Below, piece by piece: positions 5,930-58,411 of a stretch of 64,000 nt of DNA; position 1 is the stretch's first letter; each line of letters starts with the position of its first letter. Made by a program: the position numbers and the translations under genes. This DNA is from Podarcis liolepis. Lineage: Eukaryota. The stretch lies in assembly GCA_965112155.1 (NCBI GenBank), contig OZ218109.1; one strand, given 5' to 3'. The notes beneath the pieces were generated by a model. The model had not been told where the DNA came from and did not search any database. It saw only the letters and a program-made list of their open reading frames with translations.

Positions 5930-6030
5930 AAGGGTGAGGAGCTTAAGGCCTGCCAGATGTTGTTGGGCAGCAGCTCCCATCATCCCTGACCATTGCCCAG
6001 GCTGGCTGAGGGCAGACATCCTGCAACATC
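5930..6030. mobile_element. Degenerate hAT-type palindromic MITE
   Basis: CCAGATGTTGTTGGGCAGCAGCTCCCATCATCCCTGACCA core shared with the intact copies at 10757, 30903 and 50283. Similar relics lie at ~1540-1640, ~12095-12185 and ~20430-20550. Confidence 0.6.
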
Positions 6031-6302: not shown

Positions 6303-7912
6303 TCATAGAAAGCTTTCACAGAATCCTAAAATTGTGGATTGGAAGGGACTCAGAGGACCATCCAGTCCAACCCCCTGCAATGCAGAAATCTCAACTAAAG
6401 CATCAGTGACAGATGGCCATCCAACCTCTGCTTTAAAACCTGCAATGAAAGAAAGTCCACCACCTTCTGAAGGAGTCTGTTCCAATGTCAAACTATTGCG
6501 TGGACAGGCGGAGTCCCCAGATCCTGCATGGTTCCCCCGTCATGTGGAATAACGACTCAAGACAACGTGCTATGGGATTAAATTGGCCACAACTTTATTA
6601 AATTTCAAATGTGGGTAGACCTTGGCTCAGGCATTGGGCATCCTCCCTCCCCGGTCCCCAGCCGGGGACCTAGGGAGCATCAGGGTTATCCAGTGTGTGG
6701 GGGGGGGGGGATGGGCCGGCTCTGGAGAACATATGTTCAAGCAGAGATAGCCGCCCCCGTAACGCTGCCGCCGCAGGAGAGAGCAATGACGACCTTTCGG
6801 TGTACGACCAAAGCCTCCCTTCAGAAAACCCCTTTAACGGGGAACCCTGGTATCGCCGCCGCAAGAGGAAGATGGACGAAAGGATTCCGCCCAAGGCCTG
6901 ATACCACCAAAGTTGTGACGTTTTGCTACGGGAAAGGCGAAACCTGCCAATGCAGGGAAATTCCTTTCCGGCCCTTTAACAGCGACCTTAACGTAGCAGC
7001 GCCCGCATACCTGTGAAGAAAAGTTAACCTGCAAAACCTGTGAAGAAAAGTTAACCTGCAAAATAAGGCATTAACTGAGGGTGGGTAGGGTGGAAGAAGC
7101 TCTGGAGCCAAGTGAGGATTCCTAGGTAAGATCCTCCCTCTATTGTGTGGGCAGGTAATCCCTCCCCTACCTGGCCTGGTCTCCTTGGCAACGCTTCCCC
7201 CAGGTGGGATTGGACAACTGACTGAGGTAGGCGGAGACCTCCAGGTATCCCACCTGAGGGAAGGCAAAGCCAAGCCTATGCTGTTGGAGCCACTCCAGAT
7301 CTAGGGGCTGCACGCGTCCACGCAAAGGGCGCCCCCCGTTTTAAGCGGGGAGCGGTCATTCTTACTGTCATGAAGTTGTTCCTGACGTTTAGTCAGAATC
7401 TCCTTTCTTATAACTTGAATCCATTGGTTCAAGTGCTACCCTCCAGAGCAGGAGAAAACAAGCTTGCTCCTTCTTCCATGTGGCAGCCCTTTAGATATTT
7501 GGCAATGGCCATCATATTTCCTCTCAGTAACCTCTTTTCCAGGCTAAACATATGCAGATCCCTCAACTGTTCTTCATAAGTCTTGGTTTCCGGACCCTTG
7601 ATCATCTCGCATGCCCTCCTCTGCACATATCTCAGCCTGTTGATATCTTTCTTAAATTGTGGTGCCCAGAACTGTTCTGTGGCACCCAGGTGTAGTCTGA
7701 CCAAGGCAGAATAGAGTGGTACTATTACTTCCCTTGATCTGGACGCGATACTTATGTTGATGCAGCCTAGAATAGCATTAGTTGTTTTTTGTTTTGTTTT
7801 TTGCTGCTACTGCTGCTGCATCACACTGTTGACCCATGTTAAGCTTGTGGTCTATTAAGACCCTAGGTCCTTTTCACATGTGCTACAGGTCTCCACCATC
7901 CTATAATTGTGC
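6303..7912 (-). mobile_element. CR1 LINE 3' fragment (RT C-terminus and 3' UTR), split by element A at 6496-7357
   Basis: ORF 7429-7704 reads QFWAPQFKKDINRLRYVQRRACEMIKGPETKTYEEQLRDLHMFSLEKRLLRG, typical of the CR1 ORF2 end. 6303-6495 is the CR1 3' tail, and the two halves join as ...TGTCAAACTATTCTTACTGTC. Confidence 0.9.
6496..7357 (-). mobile_element. Element A: unclassified non-coding structured mobile element, CpG-rich and probably young
   Basis: Inserted cleanly into a CR1. Inverted repeats TTGCGTGGAC (6496-6505) and GTCCACGCAA (7316-7325) are followed by the hairpin CGCCCCCCG-TTTTAAG-CGGGGAGCG. AATAAAGTTGTGGCC lies on the minus strand at 6585-6599. It shares motifs with 45229-46024 and 50908-51719. 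Confidence 0.85.
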
Positions 7913-18243: not shown

Positions 18244-18602
18244 TTATTTAAACTAAGGTTACGAGATGTCCCTGTTCTCCAGGGACAGTCCCCGGATTTA
18301 CAAATCAGTCCCCTGACAAAATCCATCCTCTTCAACTGAAGTTAAAAAGTGTCCCTGGATTCATTGGAAAAAATTTGGTAACCTTAATTTATACCCCACC
18401 CAGCTGGCTGGGTTTCCCCAGCTACTCTGGGCGGTTCCCAACAGAAAATTAAAAGCACAATAAAACGTCAAACATTAAAAACTTCCCTAAACAGGGCTGC
18501 CTTCAGATGTCTTCTGTAAGTCAGATAGTTGTTTATTTCCTTGACATTTGAAGGGAGGGCATTCCACAGGGTGGGCGTGACTACTGAGAAGGCCCTCTGC
18601 CT
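18204..18602 (-). mobile_element. L2 LINE 3' end with a TAA-repeat tail, interrupted by a hAT MITE
   Basis: Shares AAACAGGGCTGCCTTCAGATGTCTTCT...GGGAGGGCATTCCACAGGG with the copies at 33881, 42372, 47660 and 58203. Confidence 0.8.
18254..18386. mobile_element. hAT-type MITE
   Basis: TIR TAAGGTTAC/GTAACCTTA; 8-bp TSD ATTTAAAC/ATTTATAC. Confidence 0.85.
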
Positions 18603-19450: not shown

Positions 19451-20899
19451 AAGCCAAATAAGGAATTATATTATTGTAGCTGTTGGAATCTCTCTTCAAC
19501 AAATTGTATGGTCATATCTAAGACAGCATAGTGGAAACCTACTTTGAATTTGGGTTGTTTTTGTTTTGGATCCTGGCCTACAGTTCAGCTGTGCATCATT
19601 ATGTCCTTGATTTGAAACAAGCATTAAAGTAGATCAGAATGGACTTTGCAATCTTAGCATTCAGTCCACAAGGGGCAGAGTGGCTTCTGAATAAGGAGGG
19701 GGAAGTGCTATAAGTATGAGGATTTTTATAAAAGCGAAGATCTTCCCTTCCCATGCTCTGAGCAAATGATTTCTTTGTTTCCGAGACTACCAAGATCAGT
19801 GGAATGATACACTTCTTATCTTGTAATGAATTCTAAGGAAGAACAGTCTCTGGCACCTAAGGCAGACTTACCACTGTCAACATAGACTGCTTCTTTTGAC
19901 AAGAACAAAATGATGAGCTCTTAAATGCAGAACTGTTCTCACTGAGGAACCTTTTTATGCATACTTAGACAACCTTCAAGGGCAGGAGGGGAGCCATATA
20001 CCATAGCTAACCAGCGATACTGACATCTGTCTTTCACAGAGAGCCAAGGGAGTCTTGAAAAGATCACAGTTGGCAAAAGTAACTGATTAAGATAAATCTA
20101 TAAATTATATTGCTCGGTGTGTAAGCTTTCCTAAGATATACATCGCACACCATGTGCTTGGGCAAGAAAATTAAAATAGCATGGGAAAGAAAGGAAATGT
20201 GTACCTTTTAGGGAGGAACCCCCAGGTCTAAAACAAGACAAAGCATAGCTGTTTGATTAAAACGGAACAGTTTCCTTTGTAATAACATTTTTGGCAATTA
20301 AAGTAAAATATATGTGGTGCATATTTATGATGGAATGGGTCATTTCACTATTCATAATCTGGTGGTCACCTTAAGTTTCAACATACTGGTACCGCCATGA
20401 ATTTTTCACTTTGCAATAGAGTAGAGATGAGGAATCTTTGGCCCTCCAGATGTTGTTGGACTACAGCTCCCATTATTCCTGATCACTGGCCATGCTGACT
20501 GGGGCTGATGGGAGTCAGTGTCCAACCGCATATGGGGGCCTGCATTTACCTGACACAGAGAAATGCAAGGACTTTAAGAAAGGACAGGATAGAACACAGA
20601 CTATTGATGTTATAAGCCTTGGCACATAGGATCTAGTGATGACTGATACCCTCATTTGTTCCTTTGCCTTTTTAGCTTCACCTGCTGACACATATATTTT
20701 ATCTGGAAACAAGAAAAGGGTTTTGAATTTCTGGGAGCATGCCTCTGCAAAATCAACCCTCAAATCTATATGTGAAGCAGCTGTATTCAGACCAGGGCTG
20801 ACTCTGGTGACACACACATCTGTGGTAGGTATGGGTACATCTATCAACTTCAGTTTCTTGCCATTTCCAATTCTACTGAGCTTATTTCTCCACATTTGC

Positions 20900-30902: not shown

Positions 30903-31038
30903 CAGTGTTCCCCAACCTTGGGCCTCCAGCTGTTTTTGGACTACAACTCCCATCATCCTTGACCACTGGTCTTGCTAGCGAGGGATGATGGGAGTTGTAG
31001 TCCAAAAACAGCTGGAGGCCCAAGGTTGGGGAACACTG
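30903..31038. mobile_element. Young hAT-type palindromic MITE
   Basis: Long, near-perfect TIRs starting CAGTGTTCCCCAACCTTGGG; perfect 8-bp TSD CTTTAGGA at 30895-30902 and 31039-31046. Confidence 0.95.
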
Positions 31039-31072
31039 CTTTAGGACTCTCCCCTACAGAGGGGGGAAAAAT

Positions 31073-35875: not shown

Positions 35876-36043
35876 GAGGGCCATAGCTCAATGATAGAGA
35901 ATCTGCCTCGCACACAGAAGTTCCCAGGTTCAATTCCTGGCATCTCTAGTTAGGGCTGAGAGACCCCATTTGAAATCCTGCCAATCAGTGCAGACAATAC
36001 TGAGCTAGATGGACCAATGGCCTGATGCGGTATAAGGAAGCTT
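35876..36043 (+). mobile_element. Squam2-like tRNA-derived SINE; its tail resumes at 36646
   Basis: TAGCTCAATGAT A-box, GGTTCAATTCC B-box and CR1-like tail GAGCTAGATGGACCAATGG...TATAAGGAAGCTT|CCTATATTC. Confidence 0.8.
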
Positions 36044-42800: not shown

Positions 42801-45228
42801 GATGAGACCAGAAGCCCATCTTATCCAGCATCCTGTTTTGTACAGTGGCCCATCACATTCAAGGAGGCCTACCAGCTGGGTGTCAGCAGTTCCTTTGGCT
42901 CATCTAGTCCAACATTCTGTTCTCACAGTGACCAACCAGAGACCTGTGAGAAGTCCACAAGCAAGACCTGACTGCAACACCACTCAATCTCCCCTCCAGC
43001 AGTTTTCAGTGGCTGTTATTCACAAACACACTGTCTCCAAGAGTGGAGGTATCAGGGTTAGTAGCCATCAAGAAATAGCACTCCAACTCCAAACCAAAAC
43101 ATTGTAATCTGACGTGAGCTTTACTCTACAGAGCAAGGAAAATTGAAATCAAACTTCCTGCACCTCCAGTTGAACCTTGAGCCCAAGCTGTTTGCAGCCT
43201 AATTATCCTAAAGGAATATTTCCTTTTAATTTTAAGCAGCTGCTCCTCTCCTATTTCGTCCCCAATGAAACATGAGGGTTTTATGCAAAACCTCCACTGA
43301 GCATGTGCAAGTGTGCGTTTTCTTTCTCCGCATATGAATTTCTTCTAATATCTGTAACTGGCCACAGTGGAATCCCTGCACATCTTTCTCCCGGACCTGT
43401 TTAATGAAATCTGCAGTTCCCCACTCAGATTCATTTTGGATACCCCCTATGTTTCTTCTTTAAATACCAGTGATCTAGACACTAAATGTGCAGAAGTGGT
43501 CTCCCATAACGTTAATGCATATCTCTATTCCTTTAGTTATCACATGGGTGGCCTCATGAGTGGCATAATATGTTGGAGCACTCTCTCTCTCCTGCTGTCC
43601 TGATGAAAGTATTCGGCTCACAATGAAAATTGAGGCAATAGGCAACATTACAGCATGCTTGGCTCAGCTTGTTGGCAGTGACGATGAAGCATTCATTGCC
43701 ACTATGGAACAGATGAAATCAAAAGCACAGGCTATTAAACTATACACTACCATTGGGGGCTGTAAGTCTTTTCTGCAAATGACACCTTTGTTATTTTCCT
43801 AAACGAGTTCATCAACGTATAGCATTCGAATGCACTAAATCACAGAGGCATTTAGGAATGGATAAACAGATGGACAAATAACAGATTTATTTTATTTTCT
43901 TCCCCTTCTCCTTTAAATATCTTCCTTCCTCCTACTCCACAAAAGGGACATGATCCAATTCAAGAGAATCATAGTATTTCTTGTTGGTGATACTTCTCAT
44001 CATATATATATTTCTGTTTAGTTTTGTTTTGTGTTTTGCATCGCCCCAATTTATCACTATTGTTTGACAATAGTATGTTCCAGCTAATCATTCTGTCGCT
44101 TGTCTTTCACTTTCACCCATCCATCTGCAGATTTTAAAAGTACACATTTCCTCTGGTATTCTTCCCTCTGATTTTTAAAATACTGTTTTTCTACAAATTT
44201 CCTGACAATGCTTAAAAAAAAGAACATCTGAATTTCTGTCACTCAGCATGATCTTTATTTTCTTGCTCTCCACTATTATTTGTTTCAAATGACTAACATT
44301 TAGGGTGAAATACTGAACTAATCACTATCCAAAAGCTGTAATAAACTCTCCAGTGGAAGTGAGTCCAGTTGTTGCCTGGTCAGCGGAAGGGTGCCTTTCT
44401 TACATCTGCTGCAGTTAGCCTTAAAACGGCAGCTTGCCATTTGCAGAACATCCTCTGTAGGTATTTTTTGCATTGCTCTTTGTTAATCAAGCCCAGTTCC
44501 ATTGCTGTAGCTTACCAAAGCTGCTGACCTGTTCTTTTCCCCCATAGTTAATTTTCCAGCATCAGTTACACCAATAAATCTTAACTAATGTACATTTAAT
44601 AGAATATATTGCATGAAAGATGGGGAAGGAAAGAAGGCACTTTAGGGGATTCTTGGTGTAATTAAAGGCCTTTTAAAGAATTAATTGAGGAGCTAATTTA
44701 GGGAGGAATGTTCAGATGAAAAGGGTCTTGAATCCGTAATTTTGGATGCAGCATTATGCCTGAATTATGGTGGTATTAGCAGTGAACAGGGCACAGCACT
44801 GACTTTGCTAATCTCCCACCTAGTGTTTATTCCTGTACTTAAATCACCCTAGTGATGAGAATCAATGCACAAGCACCAAATGTAAGCCAGTAGTGTGTTT
44901 TAGCCATTGTGTGATACTTCTGCAAGTGACCAGAAGCCATTACGCAATATCTCATGTGTATATAATGGAGAGATAGCCTTAGGCTGTTCATCAGACAGAG
45001 GAGCTGATCGTCATTCTATACTTGCCCCTTTTGGAAAAGCAAGCAACCAACAGCATGGCTAGACATGCAGGCATCTCCCATAGAGGGCTGAGACAGCAGA
45101 GAAGTACACAGCCTCCAAACAATCAAAGACAAAGCATCATGAAATAAATCAAGACAAAAAAGTGTTTTGCTGCAAGTGTGTGTTTCCATGCAGGAGCTAT
45201 ACAGTAGGAGATCACACAGCCTGTAAGA

Positions 45229-46024
45229 AAGCGTGTCCTCCCTAAAAAAGGGCATGTGTTGTGGTGAGACCTGGAGACTGACCTCCTGATTGTGGGTGGG
45301 TATATTGGACAGCCACAACACCCGACTGGTAGGTCCCTTGTTGCTGGGTTTAATCTGGCCAATGGGGAGCTGTTTAAATGGACTGAGGGACCTATATATA
45401 CCTATGCATGTGACCCAGAGCTTCCTCTTTTGGCTTGTGCATCGGAACACCCGCCCACCTCTCCCTATATTTAGGGCTTGTTGCGCTTGACCTTGCTATG
45501 CCGTCATGTGTCATCTGTCGTTGGGACAGGGGCACAGCAGGAATTTTCCCCACTTGGCTGATTGGTTGTTGCCATTTGGGTTTCGCCTGCTGCGTAGCAA
45601 ATCGTCACAACTTGTAAGGTTGTGGATAGGCACTGGTTCAGGTGATAGGGATGGGAGAACGGTCTCACCATCCCTATGTGAAGGGTATTCCGTTAAAGGA
45701 ATCCAGGGACTCAACTTGGTTTGGTCAACCCTTGAGAGGGGGTTGTGCCCGTGCCTGAGTCCAGGAGAGCATCTGGGGAGCGTACATAGTCCATTCCTGG
45801 GCTTTCCACCTACCTCAGGTGTTCACCCTTGGCTGACCTATGATAGAGCTCTGGGTCAGCACTACCTGCAAGGGTGCAGGGAGCTAGTCGAACCAGAGCC
45901 TATGCAACCACTCACTTTCTGTAATCAATAAAGTTGAGGCCTAAATTCTGCCAAAAACCAAAACTAAAATTTGAGTCAAATGTGTTTTTATTTAGGGGGG
46001 AAGTCTGTGGGTCTGAACACACAA
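45229..46024 (+). mobile_element. Element B: unclassified non-coding structured mobile element (A/B/C family)
   Basis: 5' hairpin GCGTGTCCT...AGGGCATGT, imperfect inverted repeats TTGTGGTGAGACC / GGTCTGAACACACAA and AATAAAGTTGAGGCC at 45927-45941. The block 45425-45640 aligns with 51098-51310. Confidence 0.8.
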
Positions 46025-47659
46025 ATAAATGCCTTTTGAAAGGGGAAATCATTGCAAGGGGAGTTGTGTTGCTGTCCCTGATTATGTCACAAACAATATC
46101 CAATCAGTGCTTTTGCCATTCAGTCTACCGGATTCCATTCAGCATTCACAAGAGCAACAAATGTGATGCAGTGGACTTACAGGGTACTTTATGCAATATG
46201 AACAAAGTACCGAGTTTTGGATATTCAAAAAATGTGATGCCCAACCCTCAACAAAAAGGCAGGATGTGTGGAGTGCATGCGACATACGTCATGCGGATGT
46301 GCAGGTTGGGAGGTTGTTGTGTCTGGGAGTGACCTCTGCACAGCTCCCTGGGTGGTCCAACCGGGCTCAGTGTTAGGAGGGGGCTGTGGAGTGACACAGC
46401 GATGTCCCAACTCTTGCACCACTTCCTACAGCACTACAAAGAGCCATGTTTGGGCATGCAGTCTGGGAGACACACAGCACAGTGGAGTAAATAATCCATT
46501 TCCCAAAGTTATTTGTCTTGACTCTTCTTTGGCATATTACTAGCTTCTGTATCAGGTGCTCTGGAACTTTGGGAGCTGAGACTTTCATAAGGGATAAGTC
46601 CTGTAAGTACAAACATGACAACATTGGGATGACAGCGAGTACCCTTGCAAACAGCATCATAATGATCAACCACAGAGACTTAAGTGTGAAGATCTCGGTT
46701 GCTATGAATAGATGTTCTTCTGCATTTCTCCACAAATTATGAAGAGTTGAAATGGCAACTTCTCAGCAGTACATTCACCCTGGAAGTAGAATATTTATAA
46801 GGCAGCTGTGCTCTCTAGCTAACCAAGAACATTATGTCTGGAAACATCTGGTTCAGAGCTACACTTGAGGGATGACCCGGGAAGATTTCATTGTAGACAA
46901 ACTTTTATATTTGCAATAAAATATATTTGAACAGCATAGCCCAAACACTGATAATCTATGATCTCACTCCACTGTTTTTGCCACCGATCAAGGGGTTTAG
47001 CTGGGTAGCTAATTATGAGTTTCTTGCAAAGTCTAATCCATCCTCAGAACAGATGCAATTCATGTGCATTGCTTATCTACTTTCCTGATTGCAACATTTA
47101 ATATTGCACAGCAACATGTAATAATTGGTAGCTGCCAGTGGATGCATACTCCATGATGTTCATTAGATTACAGCATGTATTGCAGGCAATGTGTTAGGAT
47201 GGTTGAACAATGGATGAAAACCACCATTTCCAGAAAGGTATGTTAAAGTAAAGTCTTCTGTAATCCATAGTGCATTGTAAAATTGCATGACAAAAACACA
47301 GATGAAAAGTGAAATAACAGAATTTGACATATCCTGGCAGAGCCACTGGTTCCTGATGACACACTCTTTCTTCCATTTAGATGCTGACAGTATCTCAACA
47401 GAAATCTATTTGACAATAATGCCCTACAGAAAACTTAACTATGTAAACACTATAAAAAAATGCAACTATCCAAAACCGTCTGAGATGTCTTAACCTGCAT
47501 TTATCTGGCTCACAGCAAAAAATAAATAAAAAATGGATAAACCACCCTCCGTCTATGGGCTTTGACTAAGATTTATCTGAAATCATTGGCAACCACAGTG
47601 AAAGCCCACATGATATTTTGTATCACTTTGGTTGACTTCATTATTCATACATACGGTAC

Positions 47660-50282: not shown

Positions 50283-50418
50283 CGGGCTTCCTCAAACTCG
50301 GCCCTCCAGATGTTTTGAGACTACAGTTCCCATCATCCCTGACCACTGGTCCTGCTAGCTAGGGATCATGGGAGTTGTAGGCCAAAAACATCTGGAGGGC
50401 AGAGTTTGAGGAAGCCTG
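50283..50418. mobile_element. hAT-type palindromic MITE
   Basis: TIR CGGGCTTCCTCAAACTC/GAGTTTGAGGAAGCCTG with an ACTACAGTTCCCATCATCC core; the TSD is degenerate. Confidence 0.85.
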
Positions 50419-50711
50419 GTTTAAACAAAACACTTCTTTGATTTGTCTAGATCCAGCCTACGTCCACCAGCTTCGACTGAACACAGTGTAAATTCCCCTT
50501 TTAGAAATACACATGAAGGTTGGAAGAGGAGTGGGTGGCATTCACCAGAAATGGGGAGGGGGACTAAGACCTGCGAGACCAGGGTTCAAATTTCCACTCA
50601 ACCACAAAGTTTACTGGGTGACCTTGGGCCAGTCACTGCTTCTCAGCCTAGCCTACCTCACAGAGTTGTTGTGGGGAATAAATGGTGGAGAGAGTGGACA
50701 CCAGGTAAAGC

Positions 50712-50893
50712 ATAGATTGGTGCCCAAATTGTTAGACCTGGGACTTCCACCATGTTTGTGCAGTGTTGAGCATGTAGTTTTTATGTAGTTTTATGTAGTT
50801 TTGTGGTAGTTTTATGTAGTTTTTATGTAGTTTTATGTAGTTTTTCAATTTCATTGTTCCACAAGGGACAATGACAATAAAGATATCGTATAT
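50712..50893 (+). mobile_element. Internally deleted Rex1/Babar LINE fragment with an (ATGTAGTTTT)n minisatellite
   Basis: The peptide LVPKLLDLGLPPCLC (Rex1-type RT motif KL..LGL...LC) is joined to the Rex1-like 3' end CAATTTCATTG...ACAATGACAATAAAG. Tandem repeat at 50771-50845. Confidence 0.6.
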
Positions 50894-50907
50894 CGGGGGG
50901 GGGGGGG

Positions 50908-51719
50908 AGCGTGTTCTCTTTCATAGAGAGCACGTGTTGCGGTGGGGTCTGACAGGCCACCCCACTGTTGCTGGGCGGGTTAGTATGGATGACCATCCAC
51001 AGTGATTGGACGGTTGGGTTACTGGGCAAATTTTGGTGTTGCCATTTAGGGGGAGGGACCAAAGGTTATAAAATCAAGTCACGCAGCACTGACTGGGCTC
51101 TTTTGCTGCGTGCATCGGATCACCCACCCACCCTCCCTCATCTAGGGCTATTGCGTTGACCTTGCTATGCCTGTCATGGGGTCGTCTGCTTTTGGGGCAG
51201 GGGCCTGGTAGGAATTTTGTCCATATGGCTGATTGGCTGGTGCTATTTGGTTTTTGCCTACTGCGTAGCAAATCGCCACAACTTGTAAGGTTGCGGTTAG
51301 GCATTGGTTAAAAAATTGGTTGGTGGAGGGGTAAGGACTGGCGGTGCCTGCCCCTCCAATGCTGCTGCAGCAAGGGAATTCCATTAAAGGAATCCAGGGG
51401 CTTGCCATTCTTTCGTCCATACCCCTGAATGGGGCTTAGGGCCACGCAAGCCCCTGGGAGCATGAAGGGGGGGGTGAGGGTCTGGTGCCGGCTCCATGCT
51501 CTCCCCAATATTGTTTTCCCTTACTGGCTTTCGCTGGAATCCGGAAGTCAGTTCTGTCCCTGGGCGTGGGGACAGATAGTTGGAACCAATGCCTAAACAA
51601 TCACTCACATTTATGTATTTTAATAAAGTTGTGGCCAAAGTTATGCCAAAAACCTTAAACAAAAATTATATGTGAATTGTGAATTATTTAGGGGTGGCTT
51701 GGGGGACCTCAACACGCAA
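50908..51719 (+). mobile_element. Element C: unclassified non-coding structured mobile element (A/B/C family)
   Basis: 5' hairpin GCGTGTTCTCT-TTCAT-AGAGAGCACGT, imperfect inverted repeats TTGCGGTGGGGTC / GACCTCAACACGCAA, TATAAAA at 51067-51073 and AATAAAGTTGTGGCC at 51622-51636. Confidence 0.85.
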
Positions 51720-57234: not shown

Positions 57235-58082
57235 GTTGTTGTTGTTCAGTCGTTTAGTCGTGTCCGACTCTTCGTGACCCCATGGACCAGAGAACGCCAG
57301 GCACTCCTGTCTTCCACTGCCTACCGCAGTTTGGTCAAACTCAGGCTGGTAGCTTCGAGAACACTGTCCAACCATCTCGTCCTCTGTCGTCCCCTTCTCC
57401 TTGTGCCCTCCATCTTTCCCAACATCAGGGTCTTTTGCAGGGAGTCTTATCTTCTCATGAGGTGGCCAAAGTATTGGAGCCTCAGCTTCAGGATCTGTCC
57501 TTCCAGTGAGCACTCAGGGCTGATTTCCTTAAGAATGGATAGGTTTGATCTTCTTGCAGTCCATGGGACTCTCAAGAGTCTCTTCCATCACCATAATTCA
57601 AAAGCATCAATTCTTCAGCGATCGGCCTTCTTTATGGTCCAGCTCTCACTTCCATACATCACTACTGGGGAAACCATGGCTTTAACTATATAGGTCTTTG
57701 TTGGCAAGGTGATGTCTCTGCTTTTTAAGATGCTGTCTAGGTTTGTCATTGCTTTTCTCCCAAGAAGCAGGGGTCTTTTAATTTCGTGACTGCTGTCACC
57801 ATCTGCAGTGATCATGGAGCCCAAGAAAGTAAAATCTCTCATTGCCTCCATTTCTTCCCCTTCTATTTGCCAGGAGGTGATGGGCCCAGTGGCCATGATC
57901 TTAGTTTTTTTGATGTTGAGCTTCAGACCATATTTTGCGCTTTCCTCTTTCACCCTCATTAAAAGGTTCTTTAATTCCTCCTCACTTTCTGCCATCAAGG
58001 TTGTGTCATCTGCATATCTGAGGTTGTTGATATTTCTTCTGGCAATCTTAATTCCGGCTTGGGATTCATCCAGCCCAGCCTT
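57235..58082 (-). mobile_element. 5'-truncated RTE-BovB LINE (RT domain to 3' end)
   Basis: ORF 57615-58094 reads AGIKIARRNINNLRYADDTTLMAESEEELKNLLMRVKEESAKYGLKLNIKKTKIM (YADD RT motif). The 3' end is GGGGTCACGAAGAGTCGGACACGACT followed by (CAA)n. Confidence 0.97.
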
Positions 58083-58202
58083 AAAAGCAGTCATTAAATA
58101 TATAAATTAGATAAAGGATATTGCTGTCAAAGTCATATCATTTAAATATTTATATTATTGTTACTAAGGGCATCAGGTCTACTTCCTCTGGAAGTGAGTA
58201 GT

Positions 58203-58411
58203 ATTTATTGTTGTTGTTGTTGTATTTAAACCCCGTCCATCTGGGGAAAGCTTACAGTACATATAAAAACATAGTAAAACTTCAAACATTAAAAGCCTCC
58301 TGATACAGGGTTGCCTTCAGATGTTTTCTAAAAATCAGATAGTTGATCATTTCCTTAACATCTGATGGGAGGGCATTCCACAGAGAGGGTGCCACTGTTG
58401 ATAAGGCCCTC
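58203..58411 (-). mobile_element. L2 LINE 3' end
   Basis: Minus-strand peptide RALSTVAPSLWNALPSDVKEMINYLIFRKHLKATLYQEAF. Confidence 0.8.

Follow-up and report, generated by a model that had tools for sequence, protein, structure and literature searches.

A covarying three-way RNA junction in a non-coding, retroelement-like repeat of the lizard Podarcis liolepis

Introduction

Gene-less retroelements keep only what they need in cis, and the modules that they retain tell us which signals the mobilising machinery recognises. In retroviruses, the packaging signals in the leader are junction structures, and the RNAs of stringent LINE/SINE pairs have structured handles in common. Here, we describe a repeat in the lizard Podarcis liolepis that is comparable to retroviral Psi leaders and LINE/SINE handles in that a covarying multi-helix RNA, with exposed invariant loops on variable stems, makes up a non-coding retroelement part that is retained in gene-less derivatives. 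It differs from them in having no sequence homology to them and in being carried by an element without LTR pairs, PBS, poly(A) tail or target-site duplications.

To our knowledge, tyrosine-recombinase retroelements are the least understood of all retrotransposons, and we know of no account of their priming, packaging or RNA requirements. Using the definitions of these elements given in PMC9210276 and PMC7192593, we find that the repeat shares with DIRS-like and Ngaro-like elements the absence of a target-site duplication and, in two of its copies (A and C), imperfect terminal inverted repeats. Unlike them, it has neither reverse-transcriptase or recombinase ORFs nor split direct repeats, and an internal complementary region is not clear.

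Two described RNA modules invite comparison. The ENE of KSHV PAN, with 5+5 U, forms five U-A-U triples plus A-minor contacts (Brown 2020 review, PMC7583470). More than 200 ENEs have been predicted, including some in plant and fungal transposons and in stickleback retroviruses (PMC7583470, PMC12501189), and the study of Evade established that both the U tracts and the flanking G-C pairs are essential (PMC12501189). Like the ENEs of PAN and of Arabidopsis Evade/Copia93, the structure described here contains a stem-loop with U runs on both strands and adjacent G-C pairs, in a retroelement RNA and upstream of a poly(A) signal. However, its U runs are of 3-4 nucleotides in the common form as opposed to at least 5, A, C and G are conserved within the loop, and the loop belongs to one arm of a three-way junction, more than 330 nt away from a poly(A) signal that approaches it only via long-range helices. 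The second module is the MALAT1-like triple helix with its mascRNA, which, as far as the citing article conveys, is duplicated in anole lizard transcripts (Zhang et al. 2017, cited in PMC10869381). On that account, the two systems are alike in being repeated, structured, 3'-end-related RNAs of squamate genomes. In contrast to MALAT1-like modules, the present repeat shows no tRNA-like structure (ARAGORN, 45150-46100), no Rfam mascRNA or MALAT1 match, no long bipartite U-rich motifs and no encoded A-rich tract conserved across copies.

Results

A diverged non-coding repeat that retains discrete modules

The window, i.e. the whole stretch of 64,000 nucleotides analysed here (contig OZ218109.1 of assembly GCA_965112155.1), contains three copies, A, B and C, of a non-coding repeat of ~800 bp:

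6496-7325, minus strand: element A (three-copy alignment)
45231-46024, plus strand: element B, the whole non-coding unit of ~794 bp (three-copy alignment, BLAST blocks)
50909-51719, plus strand: element C (three-copy alignment)
45359-45363, plus strand: CCAAT box of B, in a U3-like region with putative promoter function (read from the sequence)
45393-45400, plus strand: TATA-like box of B, in the same U3-like, putative promoter region (read from the sequence)

Further copies were not found in the window, as nhmmer searches with profiles for the junction and for the entire domain returned A, B and C only. The initial annotation had pointed to a similar motif in the 3' UTRs of some non-avian CR1 LINEs; within the window, this link gained no support, the core GGAATTT...GTTTCGCC and the profile matching A, B and C only. 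ORFs of note and Pfam domains are absent in and beside the three elements, and no relatives were found for a 141-aa ORF in B and a 66-aa open stretch in C, both spurious ORF calls that had been used to harvest copies. Viral, metagenome and prokaryotic genome collections scanned for the invariant 21-mer gave chance matches only: the pattern CGTAGCAAANCGNCACAACTT was seen in 0 viral, 7 metagenome and 2 genome contigs, all nine without junction context. We found no prior account of the element in the literature that we searched; the repeat family may already be catalogued in Repbase or Dfam.

All copies present their modules in the same order. A left end with two direct GCGTG motifs is followed by the CCAAT box, the TATA-like box (B and C only), the junction, an invariant block CGUAGCAAAnCGnCACAACUU, a hairpin with a (G/A)UUAAA hexaloop, an invariant AAUAAAGUUGnGGCC and a GU-rich stretch, and the right end reads CACGCAA, inverted relative to the left end. 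At positions equivalent to the two boxes of B, copy C has GATTGG and TATAAAA, while copy A has CCAAT and no clear TATA. The copies are strongly diverged and retain discrete modules: identity between B and C is 80% in the junction, 87% in the linker and the 5' arms of the long-range helices and 80% in the poly(A)-signal block, as against 59% in the U3-like region, 59% in the interior of the closed domain and 67% in the U5-like region. Since conserved blocks alternate with non-aligning stretches, B and C, which lie 5.7 kb apart, are not the LTR pair of one insertion. The idea that they are the two LTRs of a single 5.7-kb element was thus rejected: divergence is modular rather than uniform, and no retroelement ORFs are present in the interval.

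Some local features are confined to single copies. In B, a perfect 12-nt inverted repeat, TGACCCAGAGCT at 45411-45422 and AGCTCTGGGTCA at 45847-45858, 424 nt apart, joins sequence immediately past the TATA-like box to sequence that precedes the 3' arm of LR1 (see below); no equivalent was found in A or C. Immediately upstream of the junction of copy A is an exact 27-bp tandem duplication (7009-7062), and directly upstream of copy C are a microsatellite of ~10 bp units, (TAGTTTTATG)n, at 50760-50846 and a 13-nt G run at 50896-50908.

Termini and element class

The terminal inverted repeats are imperfect, with 40-nt arms of 73% complementarity in A and 21-nt arms of 76% complementarity in C, the latter copy having in addition a terminal CGTGTTG motif. 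No target-site duplication was seen: the flanking 5 nt are unlike each other in A and C, and agree at 4/5 positions in B. Only A starts with TG (TGCGTG...CACGCA), B and C starting with AGCGTG. A solo LTR of an LTR retrotransposon or ERV was rejected on these grounds, TG...CA termini being limited to A and a 4-6 bp target-site duplication being absent in every copy. A tRNA-like or SINE origin was likewise rejected, with 0 genes reported by ARAGORN in 45150-46100.

The absence of a target-site duplication together with the inverted termini points towards tyrosine-recombinase retroelements. The repeat displays the DIRS-like combination of inverted terminal repeats and no target-site duplication, and a candidate for the DIRS-like internal complementary region is the second direct GCGTG at the left end, which lacks the outermost bases. 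An Ngaro assignment was not borne out: split direct repeats in the layout A1...B1-A2-B2 (PMC9210276) were not found at a length of at least 11 nt in A, B or C.

At the left end (50908-50945, 45230-45266 and 7325-7300 on the minus strand), the two direct copies of the terminal GCGTG motif lie ~19 nt apart in B and C and 3 nt apart in A, forming a hairpin in the case of C, and the right end has a single, inverted copy of the motif. This arrangement resembles recombinase or transposase binding-site arrays.

A three-way junction in each copy

The initial annotation had proposed a three-way junction at 45493-45600. Each of its helices was found where it had been placed, and the fold goes beyond chance. 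The features of the junction in B and its counterparts in C and A are:

45493-45600, plus strand: three-way junction of B, 108 bases (RNA folding, covariation)
45493-45501/45592-45600, plus strand: P1 of B (RNA fold)
45508-45535, plus strand: P2 of B, a bulged hairpin in which 45508-45512 and 45514-45519 pair with 45525-45530 and 45531-45535 (RNA fold)
45536-45591, plus strand: P3 of B (RNA fold)
45535/6-45541 with 45586-45591/2, plus strand: lower stem of P3 (RNA fold)
45542-45548, plus strand: 5' strand of the P3 internal loop, AAUUUU(C) (RNA fold; GGAAUUU invariant in 3/3 copies)
45581-45585, plus strand: 3' strand of the P3 internal loop, UUUCG (RNA fold; GUUU(C/U)GCC conserved in 3/3 copies)
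51162-51271, plus strand: junction of C (independent refolding, -38.2 kcal/mol, z -1.6)
6922-7000, minus strand: junction of A, minimal (independent refolding, -37.4 kcal/mol, z -3.7)

In B, the minimum free energy of the junction is -46.6 kcal/mol against a shuffle mean of -33.1 (z -4.17), and 0/200 shuffles are as stable. The minus strand folds more weakly (-35.9 kcal/mol) and loses P2. Above the internal loop, P3 consists of CCCA/UGGG and UGGC/GCCA enclosing a 12-nt loop with GAUUGG. Because C45535 and G45592 are each claimed by two helices, the helices cannot all be full length together, and the minimum free energy structure has a P1 of 8 bp and a P3 of 6 bp. The junction persists within the 531-nt fold of the presumed transcript of B (z -5.7). 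In the junction of A, the 5' strand of P1 lies closer, P2 is minimal and 5 bp capped by an AUUG loop form the apex of P3.

In copy C, the 3' loop strand GGUUUUUG (51248-51255) is fully complementary to CAAAAACC (51651-51658) in an A-rich tract past the poly(A) signal, and the global minimum free energy structure of this copy adopts that pairing instead of the junction, possibly a copy-specific alternative fold. The same type of pairing comprises just 5 bp in B, and A has no A-rich tract. The apical ATTGG of P3 lies at 45560-45565, 51231-51236 and, on the minus strand, 6951-6947, and its opposite strand amounts to a strong box of CCAAT/NF-Y type (AACCAATCAG in B, AGCCAATCAG in C, GCCAATGCAG in A); it may be constrained separately at the DNA level, perhaps as a promoter element that is internal or antisense.

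Covariation and folding strand

To score the structure, an alignment of the whole domain of the three copies was used, with nine helices defined on copy B. The proposed pairs are standard pairs in 91.4% of cells, compared with 34-45% when partners are slid by 1-3 columns. Double-sided pair changes number 11 as against 0-2 in the slid controls, and 0/500 shuffles reach this count; with three sequences only, these statistics are modest, the slid controls and the double-change count being less dependent on sample size than shuffle P-values. The lower stem of P3 illustrates the pattern: it reads CAGCAGG/CCUGCUG in B, UGGUAGG/CCUACUG in C and GGAAAGG/CCUUUCC in A, and is paired at 100%, half of the pairs being compensatory. 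The two G-C pairs immediately below the internal loop are invariant in 3/3 copies, while the distal pairs of P3 covary.

Across the helices, G·U pairs outnumber A·C mismatches by 16 to 1, which indicates that it is the sense RNA that folds and not the antisense. Together, these results show that the junction is a real structure, maintained by selection in the sense RNA of a non-autonomous repeat of retroelement-like type.

Long-range helices connect the junction to the poly(A) signal

Two long-range helices, LR1 and LR2, a poly(A) signal and a further hairpin lie 3' of the junction:

45626-45639/45890-45903, plus strand: LR1 in B (three pairs with double-sided changes)
51297-51310/51583-51596, plus strand: LR1 in C (alignment)
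6902-6889/6639-6626, minus strand: LR1 in A (alignment)
45604-45613/45931-45940, plus strand: LR2 in B (5' arm GUCACAACUU)
51275-51284/51626-51635, plus strand: LR2 in C (alignment)
6919-6910/6595-6586, minus strand: LR2 in A (alignment)
45927-45932, plus strand: AAUAAA poly(A) signal of B (overlaps the LR2 3' arm, 45931-45940)
45687-45702, plus strand: hairpin of B with a (G/A)UUAAA hexaloop (covarying stem, helix 9, two compensatory pairs)

LR2 is formed by GUCACAACUU, which begins 4 nt past P1, and AAGUUGnGGC, which starts within AAUAAA. It is paired in 96.7% of cells; both arms are invariant, and hence the helix shows no covariation. The poly(A)-signal block contains AATAAAGTTGNGGCC, exact in 3/3 copies. 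In all copies, the junction lies upstream of AATAAA, at a distance of 331-358 nt, and the domain closed by LR2, directly 3' of the junction, measures 327-351 nt. LR2 pairing thereby brings the RNA that follows the poly(A) signal out at the base of P1.

The hexaloop is found at 45692-45697 in B, 51383-51388 in C and 6838-6833 (minus strand) in A, on a 5-bp covarying stem. Through the self-complementary UUAA that it contains, it could mediate dimerisation as a kissing loop; its sequence in copy C, AUUAAA, is a variant poly(A) hexamer.

The family in related lizards

The locus is present in eight related organisms. We mapped one RNA run and three probable RNA assemblies from relatives to 45100-46150 at a likeness of at least 90%. 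Coverage by reads and contigs is restricted to the element (45208-46035), and the unique flanks are never covered. Most of the relatives' reads are 90-95% alike to element B and therefore derive from paralogous copies. Thus, the family is abundant and present in RNA libraries of related lizards.

Read depth is highest over 45496-45640, which corresponds to the junction and the adjoining invariant block. Among the best-supported variants, 45536 A>G (nearly all reads) occurs with 45591 T>C (the majority), converting an A-U pair of P3 to G-C. Internal-loop substitutions number 0 among the best 40 of 87 substitution variants, and the sole listed change inside the loop is a low-frequency T insertion behind 45580, in one run. 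The relatives' reads reveal neither poly(A) ends nor start sites and fall on both strands with a depth that tracks conservation; being paralogue-derived and from both strands, the RNA reads proved uninformative as to transcript ends. Autonomous transcription of the unit, and its boundaries, are therefore inferred.

Discussion

A putative recognition module for mobilisation in trans

A recognition module best explains why a gene-less element would retain a junction that is physically coupled to its 3' end and whose loops are invariant while the stems covary freely. We propose that the junction is a cis-acting module for mobilisation in trans, read by the proteins that package or reverse-transcribe the RNA. 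This reading, which draws on three full copies, is tentative, and we put its probability at about 0.4. The partner may be a tyrosine-recombinase element of Ngaro or DIRS type; the window itself contains no autonomous partner.

According to this proposal, the unit would be transcribed from its own CCAAT/TATA region and would end at its own AAUAAA. The resulting RNA would present a three-way junction at its 5' side, followed by a closed domain of ~330 nt. LR2 and LR1 would close this domain, so that the 3' end, together with the poly(A) signal, would lie at the base of P1, and the P3 arm would display its rigidly conserved loop, GGAAUUU // GUUUCGCC, between invariant G-C pairs. That loop would most likely be recognised by Gag or the reverse transcriptase of the autonomous partner, and the gene-less RNA would thereby be packaged or copied in trans. 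With regard to the ligand of the loop, a host protein or the poly(A) tail would be equally compatible with the conservation pattern. If the family depends on tyrosine-recombinase elements, a junction tied to the poly(A) site would provide a mutable handle in a vertebrate. As a fold without an Rfam family, the junction is also a candidate new RNA family.

Alternative readings of the junction

One alternative is the one put forward in the initial annotation, an ENE-like module of a vertebrate transposon, in which the element's own poly(A) tail would be held in U-A-U triples by the U strands of the P3 loop and would make A-minor contacts with the invariant G-C pairs beneath this loop, slowing deadenylation and decay. 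Parts of that description hold: this is a structured RNA of a lizard element with a U-containing loop and invariant G-C pairs. U runs are present on both loop strands and the loop lies between G-C pairs, GG/CC below, both invariant, and C-G above, where distal P3 covaries. AAUAAA is invariant with a GU-rich region downstream, and via LR2 a tail could reach the loop, which in the presumed geometry is ~15 stacked bp from the exit of the 3' strand. ENEs are, moreover, known in LTR retrotransposons and stickleback retroviruses (PMC7583470, PMC12501189). The U tracts do not support it: contiguous U on the 5'/3' loop strands number 4/3 in B, 3/3 in A and 4/5 in C as against 5/5 in PAN, so that the loop of A, B and C alike falls short of the at least 5 U per strand of ENEs (PMC7583470). 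Conserved non-U residues occupy the loop (AA on the 5' strand, CG on the 3' strand), computed Watson-Crick pairing with A20 comes out unfavourable for B and A, at +0.9 to +1.8 kcal/mol, and no more than weak for C, at -1.0, and the junction is hundreds of nucleotides upstream of AATAAA. Nor does Rfam 15 contain a match to the junction of A, B or C, either at gathering score or at E <= 10, and the relatives' reads show no polyadenylated ends. A Watson-Crick interaction between the loop and the encoded 3' tail was rejected separately, since it reached no significance against shuffles (fractions 0.06-0.94). On balance, we regard an ENE-like clamp as unlikely. A minimal form of it, in which a junction arm would offer a platform of 3-4 U-A-U triples and the tail would be delivered by LR helices docking the polyadenylation site, strikes us as doubtful too. 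If true, it would be the first transposon ENE in an amniote and would have a new architecture, embedded in a junction and served from a distance; should the loop clamp poly(A), transposon ENEs would extend to amniotes and the known triplex minimum would be lowered.

The invariant internal loop on covarying stems would equally suit a platform for a host factor, such as a protein of nuclear export, translation or stability, in a role like that of a retroviral CTE or PCE. The element has a pol II-type promoter and a poly(A) signal, and a non-coding RNA needs export or stabilisation ahead of copying. Against this, there is no sequence or structure match to CTE, RTE, PRE or any other Rfam cis-element and no candidate protein, and we deem such a role improbable. 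The loop might instead be architectural, the U-rich loop acting as a receptor for a tertiary contact that would lock the junction to the closed domain, the GUUAAA hexaloop (45692-45697) being one possible partner. UUU/UUU of the loop and AAA of the hexaloop are invariant, both on covarying stems, and the two modules are tethered by LR1 and LR2; yet with both loops invariant there is no loop-hexaloop covariation, and this speculation from conservation, without 3D support, seems to us a long shot. Constraint could also act on the DNA, the conserved letters being transcription-factor sites of an LTR-like promoter or enhancer and the hairpins incidental. We take ATTGG to be a minus-strand CCAAT/NF-Y box, and GGAATTTCC resembles a kappa-B site; the NF-Y consensus is matched on the minus strand of the P3 apex by AACCAATCAG in B and by AGCCAATCAG in C, and A keeps GCCAAT. 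However, 11 double-sided, pairing-preserving changes and a 16:1 ratio of G·U to A·C are unexpected for protein-binding DNA, and the site is ~135-170 bp downstream of the TATA-like box. As an account of the whole structure, DNA-level signals are thus very unlikely, although they could explain the apical ATTGG alone. Hammerheads occur in Penelope-like elements and in retrozymes, and a three-way junction within a retroelement has the topology of a self-cleaving, hammerhead-like ribozyme that would process the element RNA. This candidate was rejected as extremely improbable: the sole junction strand, J1/2, is unconserved (CGUCAU in B, CUGUCAUG in C, UUAA in A), J2/3 and J3/1 are of zero length, the CUGANGA/GAAA catalytic core is absent, and no Rfam ribozyme family matches at E <= 10.

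Other features of the window

Outside the three elements, the only match in the window at an Rfam gathering score is a tRNA at 35877-35948 (39.5 bits), which may be a genuine tRNA gene or mark the head of a tRNA-derived SINE. The minus strand carries a reverse-transcriptase fragment (Pfam RVT_1, E 2.9e-11) at 57618-58094, and adjoining it, at 58205-58384, is one copy of a four-copy 180-bp repeat, the others being at 18391, 33907 and 47672; fragment and repeat are probably a LINE and a SINE sharing its tail. A short interspersed repeat containing GGGAGTTGTAGTCCAAAAACA, which we take to be a squamate-type SINE, occurs at 5935-6011, 20428-20547, 30908-31044 and 50288-50424.
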